Positions 1 through 49,200 of a stretch of 64,000 nt of DNA are shown one piece after another. The notes under the pieces are model-generated. The model did not search any database. It was not told the DNA's origin and worked only from the letters and a program-made list of their open reading frames with translations. A program made the translations under genes and the position numbers. This DNA is from Paragordius varius (taxonomy: Eukaryota; Animalia; Nematomorpha). The first letter of the stretch is position 1; every line of letters starts with the position of its first letter. The stretch is taken from NCBI GenBank assembly GCA_964247055.1, contig OZ176054.1:7006001-7070000 (forward strand), in the 5' to 3' direction.

Positions 1-104
1 AATGGTTGTTTGTGCAGTCTTAGTTCTTAAATCTATTAATATATATTTTAATGCCAATATATTTTTCAAATGTGGTCCGCGAAGCCATATGTGTTGGACA
101 CCTG
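1..104. mobile_element. Right end of a hAT-type MITE (CAGG(G)GTGTCCAAC-end family), left part not resolved
   Basis: 72-104 GTGGTCCGCGAAGCCATATGTGTTGGACACCTG resembles the end of the copy at 37126-37158 (CTACCCGCAAAGCTATTTGTGTTGGAACCCCTG); flank CTTTAGAT resembles the NNNTAGAN-type flanks of other copies. Confidence 0.6.
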
Positions 105-510
105 CTTTAGATTTTTCATTTCTAGTAGTTAACATTAAAAATTATTGGTTTATATCAAATTTCAACACGAGGCGACTGTATTTTCTTTACACTTTCAATT
201 ACATATGTAACTAATAAAAATCGATACATACCAATATGGTAATTATTTACCTCTTTAGCCAATCAAAATATCGAAATCGTCATTAATAGCTATCATTTAT
301 AAATATGGGGGAATTAATGTAAAAACCAAAAATTTTAACAACAGATTATTATCAATATTTTGTCTAAAACCATACTTTTAAATATATCATGTATTAGAAA
401 TAATTAAAAGTGAAAATAAAAAAGCTTATTATAGCACCCAAATTTAATATTCAAAAAGCTATCTAGGGCATAACTAACACTGACCCATGTTCGGGTAAGT
501 ATTACTTGCG

Positions 511-620
511 TCCTTATGCTTAAATCCTTATGCTTAAATCCTTATACTTAAATCCTTATGCTTAAATCCTTATACTTACGTCCTTATGCTTAAATCCTTA
601 TGCTTACGTCCTTATGCTTA
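511..620 (+). repeat. Subterminal 14-bp tandem array of the foldback left arm
   Basis: About 8 copies of TCCTTAT(G/A)CTTA(AA/CG). Confidence 0.95.
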
Positions 621-1705
621 CATTTTTGAATAAAAATAATACATTCATCATAAGTCTGCTCCTAGTAGACTTATTAAAATTTCAAAGTGGCATAACTTTA
701 AAAATATTGTGAATTTTTTAATTCTGTAAATTGGAGGAGGAAAAGTAAGGTATATTTAACAAATAATTTATAGGTTTGAGTAATGTTGCTTCAATCTTTT
801 GGCATTAAAAGGGGTTTTTCACAACCCCTGTTAAAAAATAGAAAATTCCTAAAACATGCATACAAAATCAAAAGTTTTTAGAAGAAACAGGTATGCATTT
901 TATCCAACTATATTTTTTAGATTTATTTGAGTCATGGAAAACGAAATATTTGCATACTTTGTGAAATAAAAAAATCTATCCAGTTTTTCAGATTCTTTAA
1001 ATTGGAGGATAAAAATGATGTATATATAACAAATTATCCATAGGTTTTAAAAATCGAATGATCGCATACACATCTTAGTGAACTAAGCTTCTTGAAAAAA
1101 TATATCTGGAACATACATGTAACACCCAAAGTTTTTTAGGTGCAATTGATTTAACCATATTTTTTAGATTTCGATGTCATGGCGATCGAATTATCTGCGC
1201 ACTTTTTGCATTTTGAGGATGAAGCATTGAAGAATCTACTTATTTTATTGGATTTTCATAAAATTTTTACTATTTGATATATAAAATATATATTTATGTT
1301 TATTATCAATAAATATATATTTTGAATTTACTTTAGTTGCAAGCGTCTAAAAATCATTTTAATCCACAGTGCACAAAATCGGAGGCTATAAAAAATATTA
1401 TGATCAATCAAATATAAAGTATATTAGGAGTATCATGGTGCTTGGTTTTAGGTCTAACGAATAATATTCAGGTATATCCAATTTTGTGGTAATTGTTCCT
1501 TATCGAAAGGTTGCAAATTAGGCAAACTTATTTGGAGTCTACGCTTAAAATTCTAAACTTTATTTTGGTTTTAAAATATAGTTTATAATTAAATGATATT
1601 ATTAAAGGAAATTAAACTTTGACCAAAAAGACCCCTAAATATTTCCCCAAATTTAAAGCAAAAGCTAATCAAAATTTTGAGTCGATAGAAATGTACATCA
1701 AGAAA

Positions 1706-2912
1706 TCTATATATTTATAAAAATGGAAAATGCTGGCTTTGTGATCTGGTACAGGAAAACCGGTAGACTCAATCAAATCCAAATATCGATAAAATATAAT
1801 CATTAATAAATGTCCCGACAATAGCTTCGCCCTTTTTTTGAAATAGGCCCCCAGTTCGGGCCCACCCCGTATGAAAAACGGGTTTTTTTTGAAAACAGAA
1901 GTCCACAAAATCGTGTTTTTGAGACAATTTTCCGGAGAACGTGTTGGACCATTCAATTTCAAATATGATTTTTGTTTACTTATTTTCGATTGCGCCGAAC
2001 ATAGCCGAGCCACTTTTTTGATTTAGGCCCTCTTTTTACCCGCTCCCCCCGTAAAATGCCACCTTTTTCAAAAAACAAAGTCCACAAAAATAATTTTCTA
2101 AATCGATTTTTCGCCCTAGGTATGAGACCGTAAAAATTCTATATGGATTCCACGTATTCCCTGTTAAAAGGCAAAAATTTTAGTCCACCGTTTATTTGAT
2201 GATAGCTGCTGGGTAAGGAGCTACCCGCTAAAAACTGATTTTTCATATAACTTTGTGAACTGTTTCCGGAAAACCGGTGATCCCAATCAAATCCAAATAT
2301 CGAAAAAATATAATCATTAATGAATGCCCCGACAATAGCTTCGCCCTTTTTTGGAATTAGGTCCCCAGTTCGGGGCCACCCCGTGTGAAAAATGGGTTAA
2401 GTCAATTTTTTGGAGAACGTGTTGGACCATTCAATTTCAAATATGATTTTTGTTTACTTATTTTCGATTGCGCCGAACATAGTCGAGTCACTTTTTTGAT
2501 TTAGGCCCTCTTTTTACCCGCCCCCCCGTGAAATGCCATTTTTTCAAAAAAAAACAAAGTCCACAAAAATATTTTTTTGATTGTATTTTTTTGCCCACGG
2601 TATGAGACTGTAAAAATTCGAGAAAGATTTTTCGTATTGCCTGTTAAAAGGCAAAAATTTTAGTCAAGCGTTTCTTTGATGATAGATGCTGAGTAAGGAG
2701 TATCTATCATATGTATAGCATGTTAAAAGATATATGGATATTAATACATTATTGATGGTAATCTATATATTTATAAAAATGGAAAATGCTGGCTTTGTGA
2801 TCTGGTACAGGAAAACCGGTAGACCCATTCAAATCACTTCGAACCCCACCCCCCCTCCCCAGAAGTCCGAAGGACTTCCTCGGGCTGCGTAGCAGCACGA
2901 GATTCACGCTAG
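1706..2912 (+). mobile_element. Non-autonomous Helitron, copy A (nested in the foldback spacer)
   Basis: A|TCTATATATTTATAAAAATGG 5' end, 3' hairpin CGGGCTGC-GTA-GCAGCACG about 9 nt before CTAG|T; inserted between A1705 and T2913 with no TSD; internal ~510-bp tandem unit; second internal 5' end at 2762. Confidence 0.88.
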
Positions 2913-4096
2913 TTATATATAAAAAGGGTTTTTGTGATATCTTAAAGCACCATAAAATACGATTGCCAAAATTTTTAAAAAAATCTATTATATTGTCAAA
3001 TTCTAATTTATATGAAAAATATTATCACGCATCGGCTTTTTTAAAAAACTGGCCCATTTTAGAGAAATCCAAAAAGTGTTTTGTGGCCTACGCTTAAAAT
3101 TTTAAATTTTATTTTTGCTTTCGAATATAGTTCATATCATAATATAATGGTATTTTTAAAGGGAAGCCTTTAGCTTTCACCAAAAAAATTTATTTGTTTA
3201 ATTTGCAACCTTTCGATAAGGAACAATTACCACAAAATTGGATATAACTCTAAATTATTCGTTAGACCTAAAACCAAGCACCATGATACTCCTAATATAC
3301 TTTATATTTGATTGATCATAATATTTTTTATAGCCTCCGATTTTATGCACTGTGGATTAAAATGAATTTTAGACACTTGCAACTAAAGTAAATTCAAAAT
3401 ATATATTTATTGATAATAAACATAAATATATAATTTTATATATCACATAGTAAAAATTTTATGAAAATCCAATAAAATAAGTAGATTCTTCAATGCTTCA
3501 TCCTCAAAATGCAAAAAGTGCGCAGATAATTCGATCGCCATGACATCGAAATCTAAAAAATATGGTTAAATCAATTGCACCTAAAAAACTTTGGGTGTTA
3601 CATGTATGTTCCAGATATATTTTTTCAAGAAGCTTAGTTCACTAAGATGTGTATGCGATCATTCAATTTTTAAAACCTATGGATAATTTGTTATATATAC
3701 ATCATTTTTATCCTCCAATATAAAGAATCTGAAAAACTGGATAGATTTTTTTATTTCACAAAGTATGCAAATATTTCGTTTTCCATGACTCAAATAAATC
3801 TAAAAAATATAGTTGGATAAAATGCATACCTGTTTCTTCTAAAAAACTGATTTTGTATGCATGTTTTAGGAATTTTCTATTTTTTAACAGGGGTTGTGTA
3901 AACCCCTTTTAATGCCAAAAGATTGAAGCAACATTACTCAAACCTATAAATTATTTGTTAAATATACCTTACTTTCCCTCCTCCAATTTACAGAATTAAA
4001 AAATTCACAATATTTTTAAAGTTATGCCACTTTGAAATTTTAATAAGTCTACTAGGAGCAGACTTATGATGAATGTATTATTTTTATTCAAAAATG

Positions 4097-4207
4097 TAAG
4101 CATAAGGACGTAAGCATAAGGATTTAAGCATAAGGACGTAAGTATAAGGATTTATGCATAAGGACGTAAGCATAAGGAATTAAGCATAAGGATTTAAGCA
4201 TAAGGAC
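4097..4207 (-). repeat. Subterminal 14-bp tandem array of the foldback right arm
   Basis: About 8 copies of TAAGCATAAGGA(CG/TT), the reverse complement of the 511-620 array, with variant units in a different order. Confidence 0.95.
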
Positions 4208-4447
4208 GCAAGTAATACTTACCCGAACATGGGTCACTGTGTGTAGGGTCAATTTTTAAACGAAATTTTTTTTCATGTAGCTTTTAACCAGTGAATTCAT
4301 TTGCCGCAAAAATTTTAATTTGCTGAAGACTTAGTTTTTGAAATATTGAGAAAAAATCGAAACTAAGCAAAAGGTTAAAATAAGATTATTAGGGATAACT
4401 TTAAAAATAATGATAAATTTAAGATATGATTTATATTTTATCAGATA

Positions 4448-5644
4448 CTAGCGTGAATCTCGTGCTGCTACGCAGCCCGAGGAAGTCCTTCGGACTTCTG
4501 GGGGGGTTCGAAGTTTGGATTTGAATGGGTCTACCGTTTTTCCTGTGGATCACAAAGCCAGCATTTTCCATTTTTATAAATATACAGATTACCATAAATA
4601 ATGTTTTAATATCCATATATCTTTTAACATGCTATACATATGATAGATACTCCTTACTCAGCAGCTATCATCAAAGAAACGCTTGACTAAAATTTTTGCC
4701 TTTTAACAGGCAATACGAAAAATCTTTCTCGAATTTTTACAGTCTCATACCGTGGGCAAAAAAATACAATCAAAAAAATATTTTTGTGGCCTTTGTTTTT
4801 TTTGAAAAAATGGCATTTTACGGGGGGAGCGGGTAAAAAGAGGACCTAAATCAAAAAAGTGACTCGACTATGTTCGGCGCAATCGAAAATAAGTAAACAA
4901 AAATCATATTTGAAATTGAATGGTCCAACACGTTCTCCAAAAAATTGACTTAACCCATTTTTCACACGGGGTGGGCCCAAACTGGAGACCTAATTCCAAA
5001 AAAGGGCGAAGCTATTGTCGGGGCATTCATTAATGATTATATTTTTTCGATGTTTGGATTTGAATGGGTTCACCGGTTTTCCGGAAACAGATCACAAAGT
5101 TATATGAAAAATCAGTTTTTAGCGGGTAGCTCTTTACCAAGCAGCTATCATCAAATAAACGGTGGACTAAAATTTTTGCCTTTTAACAGGAAATACGTGG
5201 AATCTTTATTGAATTTTTAAGGTCTCATACCTAGGACGAAAAATCGATTTAAAAAATTATTTTTGTGGACTTTGTTTTTTGAAAAAAATGACATTTTACG
5301 GGGGGAGCGGGTAAAAAGAGGGCCTAAATCAAAAAAGTGGCTCGACTATGTTCGGCGCAATCGAAAATAAGTAAACAAAAATTATATTTGAAATTGAATG
5401 GTCCAACACGTTCTCCGGAAAATTGTCTCAAAAACACGATTTTGTGGACTTGTGTTTTCATAAAAAACCCGTTTTTCATACGGGGTGGGCCCGAACTGGG
5501 AGCCTATTTCAAAAAAAGGGCGAAGCTATTGTCGGGACATTTATTAATGATTATATTTTTTCGATATTTGGATTTGATTGGGTCTACCGGTTTTCCTGTA
5601 CCAGATCACAAAGCCAGCATTTTCCATTTTTATAAATATATAGA
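4448..5644 (-). mobile_element. Non-autonomous Helitron, copy B
   Basis: Reverse complement of copy A: CTAG at 4448-4451, 5' TC at 5644 flanked by A on the minus strand, internal second 5' end at 4588. Confidence 0.88.
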
Positions 5645-5917
5645 TTTACAATTTGAAAGCCTAATATCAAATAGTTAGGGTTTTAGATTATAAAAGCGTG
5701 TTTTTACTTTAACATACTAAGTATGCAAAAGAATTTGTTACTATATTAAAAAGTTGTTAACAATTTATTAGCTAAACTCTCTATTAAAATCTTAACACTT
5801 TTGTTTTATACAGTAAAAATAACTTATATATTAAAATAAATTAAATAAAATATTGTTTTAATTTTTCATTGTTTGTCATCTGGTTTATGAGACAATAAAT
5901 TTACTGTTGTTTTTTGG

Positions 5918-6112
5918 AATCTTACATGAGCGGGAAGAACAAGGCATATAAATTAAATACAAAATACGAGTTACAAGAAGTGGAATATTAACCAAAAATC
6001 CGTACAAACCCCCGTAACAATACTCGGCTTTGTACGGATTTTTTGTTGATATTCCACTGCTTTTAATCTACTTGTTTTATATTATATATGTTATTTCCGC
6101 TCAAGTAAGATT
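5918..6112. repeat. ~195-bp imperfect palindrome, MITE-like
   Basis: AATCTTACATGAGCGG...GTGGAATATTAACCAAAAATCCGTACAAA pairs with TTTGTACGGATTTTTTGTTGATATTCCAC...CCGCTCAAGTAAGATT around a ~20-nt centre; no clear TSD. Confidence 0.7.
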
Positions 6113-6452
6113 ATGGCATTATAATTTAATGTCACTTTTGATCACTTTATACTTTTTCGCAATAAAATTTTCATGCATCTATTTTTTATTAGGTTAAAAT
6201 TTAAAATTCTCCGAATAAAAAGTTGTTTCAGGTTGTGTACCGTTTCCATCATTTTGCAATAAATTTTAACAGCAAACTATGCGTTAAAAAACTATTATAA
6301 TGCTTAAGGTGACCAGATTTTTTGAAGGAAAAAGCGGGACAAATCTGAGAAGGGGGTGGGTCATTGGGGGGTACAACCAAAAATTTTTATACAAAAAATT
6401 TATTGTAATATTTATTTATTTTTAACAAATACATTATAAATATAAAAAAATT

Positions 6453-7262
6453 TGTACCTCACAGGTTGTTTGTACCTTATTCAATAAATTTCCATGTGCA
6501 CGAACAAAGGGTGAAGTGATTTTAATATTCTAGAAAAAAATAATAAAGACGAAATCATTACAAAGTGCGCTGGGTGATGCAAGAAGCGGGCAAAAATATT
6601 TTTAACAATTTAGCGAATAATCTTAATCAAAACATTATTGGCAGATACACAACGTTCAAACAACTGATATGTTACCCCTGGATGTGGAAAATATAGATGT
6701 TAAAATGCTTGAATATTGTAGAACTGTTGGTTAGCTCTTTTGCCAGAGATTGATTTATTTATAAAAATGTGATCTCCTAGAATCCTATTTTTTACCACAG
6801 GACAAAGGTCAAAATTCCAAGTCAAAAAAGGTTAGATAATAATTTTATACCATTACCTAATCGCAATATTATAAAGCATCCAGAAAAACAAGGCTCAATG
6901 AATAGCAATATAAAAATGTTTTATACAAACAGAAACGATTATTTGGAAGACAAGACGGTGTAATGTGACACTTTTTGATGAAGTCTCATTATTAAATAAA
7001 TATATTGAGAAAACTTATATTATGGCCAACAGAAAAAAATACATAGGATAGAAATGTTAAAATAATCATTTTTAAACAAATTATGTTCCATACAATATTA
7101 TTTTAATTGTAGAATTTGCATTATTTTTACCTGAACCACTGCTATTGAACGCGTTTTTCCACAGTAAATTAAGTAAGGACACGGAATCAAATTTAAATGT
7201 TGAATAAAAGCCATTTTGTGTGTTCAAATATAATTTGACAAATTATGAAGACTTATACAATA
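6453..7262 (+). pseudogene. Inverted, internally deleted and diverged copy of the element's own transposase gene
   Basis: Colinear blocks complementary to 8838->7378, e.g. TGTACCTCACAGGTT (6453), ATAATCTTAATCAAAACA, TTACCCCTGGATGTGGAAAAT, AAAATGTTTTATACAAAC, and a 21/21 match 7224-7244 vs 7398-7418; about 650 bp removed in at least seven deletions. Confidence 0.9.
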
Positions 7263-7313
7263 TTTTACGTGATTTTGTTTATTTTTTTACACAAAAACTT
7301 TAAAGAAAATATT

Positions 7314-9156
7314 TTATTCTTTGGTATATTTTTTGTTTGAGTGAATGCGTTTTAGCAGATTGTCATCATTTTTTAAAATTGTAGAAGTCTTCACAAGAAT
7401 TTGTCAAATTATATTTGACAGATAAAACGGCCTTTAAAGTTTCAACATTTAAATTTGATATTTCCGATGTCCACACCTGATTTACTGTGGAAAAAACGCG
7501 CTCAGTAGCAGCGTTGGTTCTAGGTAAAGATAGTGCGAATTCCACAATTTTTAAAATATTATTGTATGTAATATAGTTGGTTTCAAAATGATTAAATATT
7601 TCCAACCATTTCTTTTCTACTGTATATTTTCTTTTGTCCATAATTTAAGTTTTTCATTATTAATATATCTTTTAACTAATGATACTTCAGAAAAAAGATC
7701 ATTTTCTGAAAGATTACTTTTTGATAATTTTTGGGAGCAGATATAATCAAATGATTTTTGAACATCGCACCAATTAAATTCTGATTTTAATGTTATCCAA
7801 TGAAAATGATCAATTTCATTGAATTGCGTCGTCCAGTCTTCCAAATAATCTTTACAGTTTGTATAAAACATTTTTATATGGTACAGAATATTTTGGCGAT
7901 TTATTAAGCCTTGTTTTTGTAAATTATTTATTATATTGCGGATGGTTAATGGTATAAAATTATTTTCTAACCGTTCTTGACATTGGAATTTTAGGTTACT
8001 AACTTCATTGGCTACTTCGATTGCCGAAATTTTGTCACCTTCTATAAATTTAATAACATTTTGAAAGAGAGAAGCTTGATTATGTAAGAATTCTAACCGT
8101 ATTTTTGAACAATCACTTTCAAAAAACTTTTTTAAAGTTGTAGGACATTTGTCCTGTGATAATAAAAAAGATTTTAAAGGATCATACATTTTTAAAATTC
8201 TTTCGATAGCTGGCATAAAAGCTAACCAACGAGTTTTACAATATCCAAGCATTTTTTGATATTGAACTCCTGCATTTTCACAGAATTCTTTAAGCGTTTC
8301 AACACTACCGTGTATATATAAAAATAGCAATATAATTTAACAACTACATTTTCCACATCTAGGGGTAACAAACAGCAGCTGTTTGAATAGCGTTGTGTAT
8401 TATATGCGCTGCACACCCAACGCCAATTTTGTTTTGATTAAGATTATCTGTTAATTTATGAAAAATATTTTTTTGTTCCTCTCCTTGCTTTTCCACCAAA
8501 GTTCATATTGGTGTTGTCAGCGCAATATACGATAATTTTGTATTTTAAATTATTTTTTGCATTATTGAAGTGAATATTATTTCGGAATACCGGGTAGGGA
8601 AATTACATCTAAAATTTTAATTTTTACTCCGGTTTCTGAATCAAAATATCTCATCAAAGTGGGAAATAGTTTTGTTTCATGGTGATTTGATGCATCAGAG
8701 TATAGCGATATGGAATTAATTTTCAGCAAATCTTTTTGTATTTCAGAAAATGCATGTGGGGAAAGGAGATTGCACACAATGGCTTACGGGCACATGTAAA
8801 TTTTTTATAGAATAACGTGCGAATAACCTGTGAGGTACAGTCCATAAGAAATGATTGTGATTAACGGCGTGAAAAGATAACACGCCCTCAGCTAGTGCCA
8901 AATTCTTTTCTTCCTCTCCAAAAGGGGTTTTTGGAAAAAAATCGCTCATTTTGTAAGATGATGCCCCCATATCTAAACATTTTTTATGCTTCTGTGTTTC
9001 CATATGCTTTGTAATATCATGCTTGCCGCCATGTGCTAGGGTGAATTCCCTCTCGCATATAAGACATTTAACAAATGATTCATTCTTCGTTTTGTTAATA
9101 AAAGGAAAATCCTTCATTAATTCATCGTTGAATTTACAACCTCTTTTTGTGCTCAT
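7314..9156 (-). pseudogene. hAT transposase, broken by several frameshifts
   Basis: N-terminal CxxC...GGKHDITKH Zn-finger; YSDASNH (catalytic D); YCADNTNMNFG (second D, ~8490-8530); CAAHIIHN (CxxH); KTRWL; LSLPRTNAATERVFS (catalytic E / dimerisation region). Motifs fall in different frames (ORFs 8743-9156, 8577-8777, 8222-8416, 7617-8330, 7366-7641). Confidence 0.92.
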
Positions 9157-9169
9157 ATTTATAAACTAC

Positions 9170-9445
9170 TATTAGTATAATAAATATTATATTACCTTAA
9201 TTTTCTGTGATAAACGTGTAAGGTACCGATTTGTAGTATCAATTTGTCTTTTAAGCTACCGATTTGTGGTATTAATTTGGCTTTTTAATAATGTTGGCAA
9301 GTAATAAAACTAAAATATTAGTATAATAAATATTATATTAATTTAATTTTGTGAAATAAACGTGTAAGGTACCGATTTGTGGTATCAATTTGTCTTTTAA
9401 TCTAGAGATTTAAGGGTATTAACTTGGCTTTTTGATAATAATGAC
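9170..9445 (+). repeat. 146-bp direct duplication immediately upstream of the transposase ATG
   Basis: TATTAGTATAATAAATATTATATTA...TAAACGTGTAAGGTACCGATTTGT(A/G)GTATCAATTTGTCTTTTAA starts at 9170 and 9316; internal TACCGATTTGT sub-repeat occurs three times. Confidence 0.85.
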
Positions 9446-9851
9446 AGTAGTAGGAAGTATAGTGTATAATCACATGATATAAATTCGAAAAAAATAAATA
9501 TTTTTGATTTAAAATAAAAAATTTTAATTTAAAATTGAATAGATTTTAAAGATATTTAATGATAAAAAATTTAAACGGACAAAAAAAATTTATTTGTATT
9601 AAAAAAATTTTTTTTTATATAATCGTGAAAAAGCGGGACATTTAAAAACGTAGCAGGAAGCGGGACAAAGTGTGAAAAAGCGGGACTGTCCCGCCAAAAG
9701 CGGGACGTCTGGTCACCTTAATAATGCTCCAATCTAGTATATTTCAATACAATCATTGTTTTTTGATTATAGATTACAATTACTAAAACATAGGAGCATT
9801 TGGCTGTTCCTAAAAATTTAATTAAATGTGCTAGAGTTTGCGATTTTCATT

Positions 9852-10102: not shown

Positions 10103-11090
10103 TTTTCATTATTTGCGTAAAAGTTGTTATAACTTTGTATGATTCACAGGCTTATAATCAAATGCCCATGAAAATTCTGAGCATTTCAAAATAAACTTTA
10201 GATTTGTTTAATTCAAAGGAGTATATTAATATTTAAAAGTTATATAGTCCTTAGCACGATTTTTAATTTGAAATATTACATATTTTAATATTTGACTAAT
10301 TTATATTATTCAAAAAAATTCTTTCCATTTAGTAATTTATTCCATCATCCTTTATATCAGGATTTTTATTTTTTTAGCTATGTTCAATACAAATTCCTTA
10401 ATTTAGTCAATTTTCAGTGTTAACACCTAATTCAAGTAATCAAAGGTTTAAAAAATAAACGAATTTTAATAATGTTTTGCTTAAAACATAACATTCTTGA
10501 CACCCCTACTCTTTGGGCCTAATACATCAAATCTAAAATTTTAAATCTATAGAAAAATCTTTTATAATTACCAATTGCTTGAACATATTACTACTAACAG
10601 TATTTTGATTTGAAGCTTCAACCACCCTGAGATATAAAATCAATGTAAAGTAAGCTGGTATTGTATTTTGAACGCAGCAAATCCACACTAAGTGCCAAAA
10701 TATATATTATGTGATAGGGTCACAGAAAATGCGCTTCTCTTTAAGAAAAATCGGTAAAAATTTACAAAATATTAAAGAAAGAGTTAACAACACTTTTTTC
10801 TATATATAAGAATTTCCAAATTTATTAAAACGATAAAATATTTATATTAAATATATGCTTTTATTGTTCTTAATCTTATAAAGTTCTACAGCCGTTTATT
10901 TAAAAAAGGATCAATTTTGTATAAATAAAATTATTCTAAAGAAATTAAATTAAAATAAATTAAATATTAGACTTATTGAGAATGAGAAAGCTCCAACTTT
11001 TACCAGGAAAATGTTAAATTCAAGCTGTATCATCATGCTTTCATCCTCTGGATTAAAACATTTCAAAATATGTTAAACGAAATCAGATTA

Positions 11091-12425
11091 TCTATATATT
11101 TATAAAAATGGAAAATGCTGGCTTTGTGATCTGGTACAGGAAAACCGGTAGACCCAATCAAATCCAAATATCGAAAAAATATAATCATTAATAAATGTCC
11201 CGACAATAGCTTCGCCCTTTTTTTGAAATAGGCTCCCAGTTCGGGCCCACCCCGTATGAAAAACGGGTTTTTTTTGAAAACAGAAGTCCACAAAATCGTG
11301 TTTTTGAGACAATTTTCCAGAGAACGTGTTGGACCATTCAATTTTAAATATAATTTTTGTTTACTTATTTTCGATTGCGCCGAACATAGTCGAGCCACTT
11401 TTTTGATTTAGGCCCTCTTTTTACCCGCTCCCCCCGTAAAATGCCATTTTTTTCAAAAAAAAAAACAAAGTCCACAAAAATATTTTTTTGATTGTATTTT
11501 TTTTGCCCACGGTATGAGACTGTAAAAATTCGAGAAAGATTTTTCGTATTGCCTGTTAAAAGGCAAAAATTTTAGTCAAGCGTTTCTTTGATGATAGATG
11601 CTGAGTAAGGGGTATCTATCATATGCATAGCATGTTAAAAGATATATGGATATTAATACATTATTTGATTTAGGCCCTCTTTTTACCCGCTCCCCCCGTA
11701 AAATGCCATTTTTTTCAAAAAACAAAGTCCACAAAAATAATTTTTTAAATCGATTTTTCGTCCTAGGTATGAGACCTTAAAAATTCAATAAAGATTCCAC
11801 GTATTCCCTGTTAAAAGGCAAAAATTTTAGTCCACCGTTTATTTGATGATAGCTGCTAGGTAAGGAGCTACCCGCTAAAAACTGATTTTTCATATAACTT
11901 TGTGATCTGTTTCCGGAAAACCGGTGAACCCATTCAAATCCAAACATCAAAAAAATATAATCATTAATGAATGCCTCGACAATAGCGTCGCCCTTTTTTG
12001 GAATTAGGTCCCCAGTTAGGGCCCACCCCGTGTCAAAAATGGGTTAAGTCAATTTTTTGGAGAACGTGTTGGACCATTCAATTTCAAATATGATTTTTGT
12101 TTACTTATTTTATCGCGCTGAACATAGTCGACCCACTTTGATTTAGACCCTTTTTTTACCCGCTACCCCCGTAAAATGCCATTTTTATCAAAAAAAAACA
12201 AAGTCCACAAAAATAATTTTTTAAATCTATTTCTCCCCCAAGTAAACAATAAATTAGTATGAATGCACCGTTTTAAGATTCCTATGAAATCATAGCTATT
12301 AAATAATTTTTCGAAATAATCCACATATGTAGATCATTTTATTGTCCCTTTTTTCAAATAACCCCCTCCCCCCAGAAGTCCGAAGGACTTCCTCGGGCTG
12401 CGTAGCAGCACGAGATTTACGCTAG
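11091..12425 (+). mobile_element. Non-autonomous Helitron, copy C (mosaic)
   Basis: A|TCTATATATTTATAAAAATGG at 11091; hairpins plus CTAG|T ending at 12425; internal units shuffled relative to copies A/B; long 3' end shared with copies D/E. Confidence 0.88.
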
Positions 12426-46669: not shown

Positions 46670-49200
46670 TCCAGATCACATTTAAATTATTATAGTTAAA
46701 AGACTACTGAAGGATCGGATTTACGCTTCTACCCTAATAAAAATTATACCAAAATATTTTTATAAAATCAAGTTTGGAAGAAAAATCTCCATATCAAACT
46801 GATTCGACGCCATTTTTATATTATTTTTTGCTATTCGTATTTTTTAATATTAACCATAAAATTATAAATATTAAATTTTATCTAACATTTTTATAAACAG
46901 GAAAAATGGTTTATTTTGCATCAATTTCTATTTAGATAATGCATTTGTGGTGTTGGCTTATCCATAAATTAAGTAATATTTAGTTTTTTTAGATAAATCT
47001 TTTTTTTCGGTGGATCAATTTTATATAAGTGCAAACTATTTGCATGTTTTTAGAAATAGATTTTAAACAAGCTTGGGCCCAAATGCCCCAATTTGATTCG
47101 GAGGTTGAAATAAATATGCTCATTAAAGAGTTTTGATATACAAAAATACTTTTTAAGATATTAGAATAAACACTCTGTCCTAAACTAAAGCAAATAGAAG
47201 GAACTTATTAAATGTCATAATCTAAAAGTGAAACAATATTTAAATGTGCCATTTTAGATGTACCAAAAGCAAATTTTGGTTTTTTCTAAAAAAAACAAAA
47301 ATTCAAAGAAAGCGCAATCATTTTAAATTAACGAACTAGACCAGGGGTGTCCAAAACGGCCCTTTAAAATAGATTTGCAGCCCGTGAGATATTTTTAATA
47401 AAATCTCATAAAATTTTAGTAGAGTTGATTTTTTAAGCTTTGCATAAATTTTTCCGTATTCCGTCCATGACCTGGCCAAAATTGTCAAAATAAATAGTAT
47501 TTTACAGTTTTATGATTGAAATTTAATAAAATTATTTATTAATGCAGATATACAATTCGAATGCGGCCCGAGGGATTTTCCGATCCATAAATGCAACCAA
47601 TTTTTTTTATATATTTTGGTTTATTAATGTTAGATAAGTGCAACATTTTGCCATGGTTTCGATTCCTTCTATATTTTATAAAGAATTTAATTTTAAACAG
47701 GCCTGGGTTATCCAACTACCCCAATTTGAATCGAAGGACTAAAATGAGTGTGTTGTATCCAAGTGTTAAATACATGAGAACAATGTTTGATAATTAAATT
47801 TTAATTAAAATACTTTCAAAATTGTAATTTATTTACATGGCGCTCTTGGATATAAAACTTCCCCGATATCGCGAACAAAAAATAATAATGTGAAGTCTTG
47901 AATCAAAATTTGAAGTTATAAAAATATTCAGCATCATTGATTAATATAGAAAGGGGTATTTATGATATCTTAAAGCGTAACCGTTTCCATCATGACTCGA
48001 TATGATATGAAGTAATTTCAAAACATTTTAATTAAAATTCAAATTTTTTGAAAAATATTTAAAAATATTTTAGTTTATCTCAAAATTTAGCATATATAAA
48101 AATTTTAAGGGCACTATCCCGCATTTTTGCATTTACTTTAACACTTAGATACAACATATTGTTTCAGTTCTTCGATTCAAATTGGGGTTGTTGAATACCC
48201 CAGGTATGCTCAAACTAAATACTTCGAAAAATATGGAATGAATTGAAACCAAAAGAAATTTTTGCTATATATAATATTAATGAGCAAAATAAAAAAATTC
48301 ATTCAAAAATACTTGATATTATTTATTTTAAGGTAAAAAGGTAAAAATTAAATTAAAATGAAATGTGTGTAGCTAAATTTAATAATAAAAAATAACCACT
48401 TTTCTGTTTCTATCAAAGTTAGATGTGATTTAAATAAAAAATTAGCTATTAAATAAAAATGCTGTGAAATAAAAATGGCGTCAAAATAGTTTGATATGGA
48501 ACATTTTTTTACAAACTAAATTTTATATAGTATTGCTTATTTATATAGTTTTTATTAGGATATAAGCATGTTAAATTAGGACCGTTTCTTTCAGTACTTT
48601 TTTAATATTAAATTATATATTCTAGGGTATTTAGATACACCAATTAAATTCGAAACGTTAAGATGACTAGCCCATTTTAAATAAGCGAAAAATTTTTTAG
48701 AGTCCACATCTAAAATTAATTTTTTTTGAAAATATTATACTGCTTTTTTAGATGTTTGATATATTTTAGTGATATTTCTTGCAATGGAGCCTCTAACTTT
48801 CACCAAAATTAATTATAAATTATGCGAAAATTTTGTCATTTTCTGATATGGAGCACTTACCACAAAGGTTTAACACTTGGATACAACACAATCATTTTAG
48901 TCCTTCGATTAAAATTGGGGTAGTTAAATACCCCAGGTGTTTAAAATTAAATTTTTTAAAAAATATGGAAGGAATCGAAACCATGGCAAAATCTTGCACT
49001 TATATAACATTAATAAACCTAAATATATAAAAAATTTTATTCAAAAATACTTGATAATACTTATTTTAAGCTAAAACCGTGTAATTTAGTCAACGTGACA
49101 TGCGTGCAAAAATTAAAAAATTATACAAATTATTTTTCTATTTCCATCAATGTTAGATGTAATTTAAATATAAAATTAGCTCTACTATAAAATATGAAAA
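46670..49200. repeat. Cluster of four R1 copies (46670-47115 -, 47590-47790 -, 48125-48530 +, 48860-49200 +)
   Basis: Repeated TTCGATT(C/A)AAATTGGGG...TACCCCAGG core and AAAATGGCGTC...TTTGATATGGA flank; first and third copies form an inverted pair. Confidence 0.75.
47342..47600. mobile_element. One-ended hAT-type MITE copy
   Basis: Starts CAGGGGTGTCCAAAACGGCCCTTTAAAAT, matching the end of 26960-27241; flank AACTAGAC; other end not found. Confidence 0.65.

Follow-up and report, generated by a model that had tools for sequence, protein, structure and literature searches.

An old, decaying inverted copy of the transposase gene within the mobile unit of a hAT transposon family in Paragordius varius

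We found that a hAT element of the nematomorph Paragordius varius carries, inside its own termini, a condensed inverted copy of much of its transposase gene (the arm), and the structure was confirmed as a family-wide, derived, old, and decaying feature. The element, 3416 bp (~3.4 kb) in length, spans positions 6305 to 9720 of the window, the 64,000-nucleotide stretch that was analyzed (assembly GCA_964247055.1, contig OZ176054.1, positions 7,006,001 to 7,070,000 of the forward strand). The original prediction, made from the letters of the window, had described this architecture and had proposed that the arm is a module by which the element silences itself. The architecture held up in nearly every detail; a self-silencing function, though conceivable, is unsupported by the evolutionary evidence.

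The boundaries of the element were as first described, with a perfect 13-bp TIR (TAAGGTGACCAGA) at both ends and an identical 8-bp TSD (ATAATGCT) on both sides (Table 1). Twenty-six other copies of the family have this TIR, as does a relative, L031, on a contig of Ladona fulva. Features of the hAT superfamily that are present are the 8-bp TSD, short TIRs, and a hAT C-terminal dimerization domain (PF05699) that was matched in the ORF at 7366-7641 with 28.8 bits against a cut-off of 21.4 and was matched also in the relatives L032, P0004, and P0006. The RNase-H-like DDE core matched neither a Pfam model nor a PDB sequence. The Blackjack label given in the original prediction is tentative; for this subgroup, the literature yielded RepeatMasker class labels only. 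Homologues of the transposase numbered 4166 and were typically ~620 aa long; an exact product of the window ORF was not found in public assemblies. The copy in the window sits amid tandem-repeat blocks, with no gene visibly around it, and is adjoined by further large inverted blocks.

Table 1. Parts of the hAT element and of its inverted arm, in window coordinates
Feature	Position	Strand	Remarks
Left TSD ATAATGCT	6297-6304		8 bp, identical to 9721-9728
3'-end TIR TAAGGTGACCAGA, 13 bp	6305-6317	+	Perfect inverted match to 9708-9720
3' subterminal region	6318-6452	-	One AAGCGGGAC motif; homologous to the 3' region of arm-less L031 and L032
Inverted arm	6453-7264	+ (sense reading)	Shortened, non-coding duplicate of transposase codons ~109 to ~602
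Blastn block 1	6453-6502/8839-8787	minus	81% identity
Blastn block 2	6548-6704/8518-8336	minus	68% identity
Blastn block 3	6702-6833/8255-8125	minus	75% identity
Blastn block 4	6811-6964/7992-7823	minus	76% identity
Blastn block 5	6971-7264/7697-7375	minus	77.5% identity, E 5e-60
Potential hairpin loop, 110 nt	7265-7374	-	Last ~20 codons, stop 7314-7316, 49 nt of 3' UTR
Transposase gene remnant	7314-9156	-	ATG at 9156, stop 7314-7316, five frames
Partner of the arm	7375-8839	-	Transposase segment including the hAT C-terminal dimerization domain; blastn and PF05699
5' non-coding region	9157-9707	-	146-bp tandem repeats at 9170-9265 and 9316-9411 (repeat search)
AAGCGGGAC subterminal motifs, four or five	9631-9706		Within the 5' non-coding region; repeat search
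5'-end TIR	9708-9720	-	Perfect pair of 6305-6317
Right TSD ATAATGCT	9721-9728		8 bp, identical to 6297-6304

A blastn comparison of positions 6300-7340 with 7341-9725 returned five collinear minus-strand blocks with 68 to 81% identity, which together pair 6453-7264 with 8839-7375 and reproduce the proposed inverted copy of transposase 8838-7378 at 6453-7262. The similarity of the arm to the transposase is far above chance; at the level of the family consensus, the largest arm block reached an E value of 9e-143. The arm starts at codon ~109 (CTSQV) of a 622-codon ORF and ends ~20 codons short of the stop. Within the element, about 147 to 148 nt separate it from the 3' end, and 880 nt lie between its partner and the 5' end. 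The spacing between gene and arm, given earlier as ~50 bp past a stop at 7314, agrees with the 49 nt of 3' UTR that follow the stop codon. Two minus-strand AATAAA signals lie between the end of the ORF and the arm: the one already noted at 7278-7283 and a second, at 7313-7318, that overlaps the stop. Neither reading of the sequence nor a repeat search of the window revealed internal TIRs at the boundaries of the arm, and the ORF list contained no open frame of at least 60 aa on the plus strand of 6453-7264.

Shrinkage of the arm by at least seven deletions had been proposed, and the deletions listed were reproduced at the family-consensus level, where eight gaps spanning 12 to 216 nt (216, 23, 19, 84, 152, 12, 116, and 58 nt) are accompanied by small ones. 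The arm has 23 deletions, ~700 nt in total, against 3 small insertions, and ~45% of its length is gone. The perfect blocks shared by arm and ORF, expected at 15 to 21 nt, were found as well and comprise a 23-nt block, a 21-nt block, and several of 15 to 19 nt.

A DNA search of the genome from which the window was taken (110.6 Mb, 44 contigs) showed that the family is abundant, with hundreds of copies. Near-full-length copies number at least 40, are 89 to 96% identical, and are spread over 10 or more contigs. With the best-conserved block of the arm (6971-7264), 640 first-look candidates were obtained, and the 40 that were scored were 95 to 100% identical. The arm was present in 30/30 copies fetched, these being 30 of several hundred, a sample that rare arm-less copies or subfamilies could escape. 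Perfect private 8-bp TSDs were found in 21 of the 28 copies with both TIRs, which shows repeated transposition of the complete unit with its arm. Thus, the arm is not peculiar to the window copy, and the view that it belongs to the mobile element and is fixed in the family was borne out in every copy examined. When the genome was queried with the end of the ORF and the 3' end of the arm-less L032, all 40 scored matches were 74 to 76% identical; 28 of them had an inverted arm match a few tens of bases downstream, and no arm-less lineage was seen among the 40.

The arm is missing from four relatives in other organisms (L031, L032, L034, and L035). They resemble the window family in having the same or a near-identical TIR, an 8-bp TSD, and a transposase of 622 to 626 aa with 62 to 79% identity to that of the window family, but differ in that the stop leads directly into a 3' region of 125 to 280 nt and the TIR, with no inverted arm in any of the four. 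L031 is internally deleted and has an identical TIR, the TSD CTTTAAGA, and 192 nt from stop to TIR, and L032, from a Logan contig, has a 3' region of ~125 nt that ends in the TIR. The ORF is intact in both L034 (626 aa, 3' region of ~280 nt) and L035 (623 aa, ~125 nt). With the arm subtracted, the 3' region of the window element (49 + 147 nt) resembles that of the Ladona element in length and architecture. These comparisons indicate that the arm is a derived feature of the Paragordius varius family. The left 147 nt are homologous to the 3' end of the arm-less relatives, which makes the left terminus a true 3' end and rules out, as had been argued earlier, that the element is made of two 5' ends fused tail to tail.

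The consensus sequences of arm and ORF were compared with the outgroups in an alignment of 738 shared columns. The arm was 83.3% identical to its own ORF and 73 to 74% identical to L031 and L032; identity between the ORF and these two outgroups was 78 to 79%. Since the arm is nearest to its own ORF, it is a duplicate of the gene of its own lineage that arose after the split from L031 and L032, and the alignment places it as sister to the family's own transposase. Capture of the arm from a different subfamily was considered and, within the limits of the sampling, rejected, because none of the outgroups matches the arm as closely as its own ORF does and because the 40 scored genomic matches to the end of the L032 ORF are all equally distant (74 to 76%).

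Changes polarized with the outgroups numbered 89 (10.8%) on the arm branch and 34 (4.1%) on the ORF branch, and the arm has changed ~2.6 times faster than the ORF. The 28 full copies differ from the consensus by substitutions at 1 to 5% of positions; against the ~11% change on the arm branch, this makes the arm several-fold older than the sampled insertions, and the claim that it predates the insertion in the window stands. One argument that had been offered for this age did not survive. The arm was said to keep a family-typical reading, CARTKGEVI, that the main ORF had lost, but the main-ORF consensus of the family reads CARTKAEAIV and only the window copy is frameshifted there. Dead copies of the family have a deletion bias of ~5:1, the same bias as the arm, and a condensed arm is the outcome that neutral, deletion-biased decay would predict. 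Changes on the ORF branch were distributed 14/6/14 over the codon positions, which suggests weak purifying selection, so the contrast between a constrained ORF and a free arm depends mainly on the 2.6-fold difference in rate.

The history of the transposase itself was read from a majority-rule family consensus, which was used to count open frames and to polarize changes. Two open frames, of 523 and 110 aa, are present in the consensus of 28 copies; between them is a 1-nt deletion in an A-run that is common to 16 copies, including that in the window, and absent from 12. With the state of the 12 copies, the consensus ORF is 622 aa long and runs from MSTKRG to KKYTKE-stop (relatives, 623 to 626 aa); the arm-bearing ancestor was very probably autonomous, with a complete 622-aa ORF. 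In the window copy, the transposase is broken into five frames; this copy is a member of the younger subfamily, whose consensus is likewise split into five frames by shared indels, at least four of them frame disrupting, with subfamily-shared 1-nt indels at consensus positions 1339, 1876, 2019, and 2670. Since these frameshifts are shared throughout the subfamily, its founder was dead already, and at least 14 sampled members were mobilized in trans; the shared indels indicate that the window copy was non-autonomous by the time it inserted.

Shared and singleton variants, compared in an MK-like test, showed no codon-position bias within the family, even in the ORF, as is expected for trans-acting transposases. 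Open-frame values of up to 624 aa were not accepted as intact genes, because the same loci have internal stops and the value for L013 conflicts with the ORF count. Assembly error was also rejected as the source of the broken ORFs, given that the indels do not concentrate in homopolymers and show a deletion bias, and that substitutions are 3 to 4 times as frequent.

The account that we favor, and hold to be probable though well short of certain, is that the window contains a dead copy of a family whose ancestor gained the arm once, and that the arm is a decaying passenger whose latent hairpin is only a by-product. The common ancestor of the family would have acquired, in a single event, an internal inverted partial duplication of the transposase (codons ~109-602), located in the 3' region, immediately after the poly(A) signals of the gene, perhaps through fold-back or template-switch repair or through an inverted nested insertion with subsequent trimming. 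From then on, the arm has fared like non-coding passenger DNA and was carried with the element into hundreds of sites. A transcript passing through the loop, by read-through or from outside, could form a bulged duplex of ~670 bp, and each copy might then be a latent source of hairpin RNA that host RNAi could use against the family. Such a source would be incidental; it would not be a feedback device that evolved and is maintained.

The fold anticipated for a read-through RNA was recovered in our predictions. For minus-strand RNA spanning 8900 to 6400, the predicted structure is a long hairpin with bulges, in which 668 base pairs join arm and ORF and uninterrupted helices reach up to 23 bp. The predicted MFE was -817 kcal/mol, compared with -481 +/- 7 kcal/mol when the arm was dinucleotide shuffled (z about -46). 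With two AATAAA signals before the arm, the normal mRNA probably ends short of it, so formation of the hairpin would need read-through or outside transcription. The relatives also have an AATAAA at the position corresponding to the signals that precede the arm.

Among the natural triggers of de novo transposon silencing, those best understood are transposase genes duplicated in inverted orientation. To our knowledge, silencing duplications of this kind are rare, stationary accidents. Mu killer (Muk), a single stationary rearranged locus, silences MuDR in trans (PMC3440606). It is like the element described here in having an inverted partial transposase duplication able to yield a long hairpin RNA by read-through (PMC3440606); it differs in that our arm lies inside the mobile unit, occurs in every copy examined, is old (~83% identity) and condensed, and is known from sequence alone. 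Composite insertions of the maize hAT elements Ac/Ds, which are made by alternative transposition, contain fractured transposase inverted repeats that give rise to dsRNA and to 21- to 24-nt siRNAs silencing Ac (10.1101/2020.01.07.897926). These belong to the same superfamily, and alternative transposition is a plausible origin for the arm as well, but they are de novo chromosomal rearrangements at single loci and not a heritable part of a transposing family. The element thus shares with both maize systems an inverted duplication of transposase sequence; where those systems have a distinct, non-mobile locus that acts in trans, it has an arm inside every mobile copy examined. In our literature searches, no hAT, Blackjack, or myxozoan element with an arm built into it came to light.

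A bolder alternative, conceivable but doubtful, is that the family is a mobile Mu killer. An autonomous lineage would long have borne an anti-transposase hairpin, its non-autonomous descendants would have spread the hairpin to hundreds of loci, and the family would throttle itself by small RNAs; or else the fold would render the insertions harmless to host transcripts.

The central interpretation of the original prediction was that the arm is an evolved, element-encoded negative feedback, in which a read-through hairpin would be cut by Dicer into siRNAs against the transposase mRNA and copy number would be self-limited. We regard this as unlikely. Inverted duplications of hAT and Mutator transposases do trigger silencing in maize (10.1101/2020.01.07.897926; PMC3440606), and the genome contains Argonaute genes, at two Piwi-domain loci; no RdRP match was found in the genome that could amplify a weak trigger, which is weak evidence, as the control genomes were likewise blank. 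The predicted hairpin is very stable and includes the 23- and 21-nt perfect blocks, but blocks of this size would be about what chance yields at 83% identity over ~740 positions, and the arm is preceded by two poly(A) signals. In the reconstructed ancestor, the arm was present alongside an intact ORF; it is fixed in the family and has persisted for long. Retained in an active lineage through ~11% change, it could have been kept by selection instead of chance. The family nonetheless grew to hundreds of copies, and the window copy could not make its own transposase when it inserted. Moreover, selection for self-restraint in a trans-acting DNA transposon family is theoretically weak on population-genetic grounds, which counts against feedback.

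The alignments gave no sign of selection for complementarity between arm and ORF. Subfamily-diagnostic differences are equally frequent in the arm (~1.0%) and in the already dead ORF (~1.1%). Of the 10 arm positions diagnostic of subfamilies, 0 have a change at the partner position in the ORF as well (the closest change in the ORF was one base from a paired site), and the diagnostic arm changes all lower complementarity. Together with an arm that outpaces the ORF and shrinks with no excess conservation, these counts leave the proposed feedback unsupported.

It is very unlikely, in our estimation, that the hairpin instead acts at the level of host pre-mRNA, where a self-folding transposon would be better tolerated in genes, by intron compaction or by an excision like SOS splicing, and palindromic elements would be favored. 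Inverted-repeat pairing of DNA transposons does trigger SOS splicing in animal mRNAs (PMC12779559), and large inverted blocks flank the element in the window. Pairing within the element, however, is limited to 6453-8839, leaving ends of 148 nt and 880 nt unpaired and the boundaries not joined, and the window copy lies among tandem-repeat blocks and not visibly in a gene. Although inverted duplications are common as mis-assemblies and as products of alternative transposition (10.1101/2020.01.07.897926), a composite of two elements (tail-to-tail, with two 5' ends) or a locus-specific assembly artefact is already refuted by the multi-copy evidence, the same structure recurring at 40 or more places across 10 or more contigs with perfect private TSDs in 21/28, and is opposed also by a left terminus homologous to the 3' end of arm-less relatives and by the lack of internal TIRs at the arm boundaries.

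The architecture is here an inherited part of a successful mobile family, and the arm-less relatives are natural controls. If small RNAs come from the arms, the family would be a tractable case of a transposon that distributes its own silencing trigger, and it would inform the debate on whether transposon self-restraint can evolve. If the arms yield none, the family would show how long a large palindrome within an element can hitch-hike and how fast it erodes, with ~45% of length lost per ~11% substitution.

Very long inverted repeats in a coding DNA transposon are also found in Galileo, a foldback-like element with long TIRs (PMC3688188). The repeats of Galileo are terminal and contain transposase-binding sites, whereas those of the Paragordius varius family are internal, stop 148 nt and 880 nt short of the termini, and are made up of coding sequence and a decayed duplicate of it.

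The hAT copies L026 to L029 lie within ~55 kb of contig C2 of the Paragordius varius genome (11.20 to 11.26 Mb). All four have common flanks, lack a private target-site duplication (TSD), and carry the same internal duplication in the 5' region; they represent a segmental or tandem duplication of one rearranged copy rather than separate insertions. On contig C3, fragments of the hAT element are clustered in alternating orientation (table below), an arrangement that looks like the outcome of nested or alternative transposition.

A relative of the window's hAT element, with an internal deletion, was found outside this genome in a Ladona fulva contig (KZ308794.1; L031:5865-7410), where it adjoins a TEX47-like gene. 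Its presence in a dragonfly assembly, with an identical 13-bp TIR and 77-79% nucleotide identity, suggests horizontal transfer across widely separated animal lineages, or else contamination.

The whole P. varius genome yielded just two loci with a Piwi domain (Argonaute family), and a whole-genome search for RdRP gave no match, with control genomes equally blank. The RNAi toolkit predicted from these searches is small for an animal.

Within the window, the hAT element is flanked on both sides by blocks of a ~0.5-kb tandem repeat, and the blocks at 477-5647 are in mutually inverted orientation. A small, "near-perfect" palindrome (5948-6089; 69-nt arms, 74% complementary, 4-nt spacer) lies ~220 bp to the left of the element and could be a MITE-like hairpin. 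At 47603-49034, inverted repeats measuring 97 nt and 69 nt are 93-94% complementary, lie ~1.1-1.2 kb from each other and probably bound another TIR element.

Coordinates of repeat, fragment, and Piwi-domain features
Feature	Location	Detail
Inverted tandem-repeat pair	window 477-1526 vs 4240-3193	97.5%
Inverted tandem-repeat pair	window 1703-2924 vs 5647-4436	95%
Direct block, same ~0.5-kb repeat	window 11090-12242	
hAT fragment cluster	C3:1903064-1907720	query (window's hAT element) parts: 6-726 (+), 2673-3421 (-), 5-551 (-), 714-3421 (+)
Piwi-domain locus	C2:3353388-3355921	
Piwi-domain locus	C1:12319268-12327742
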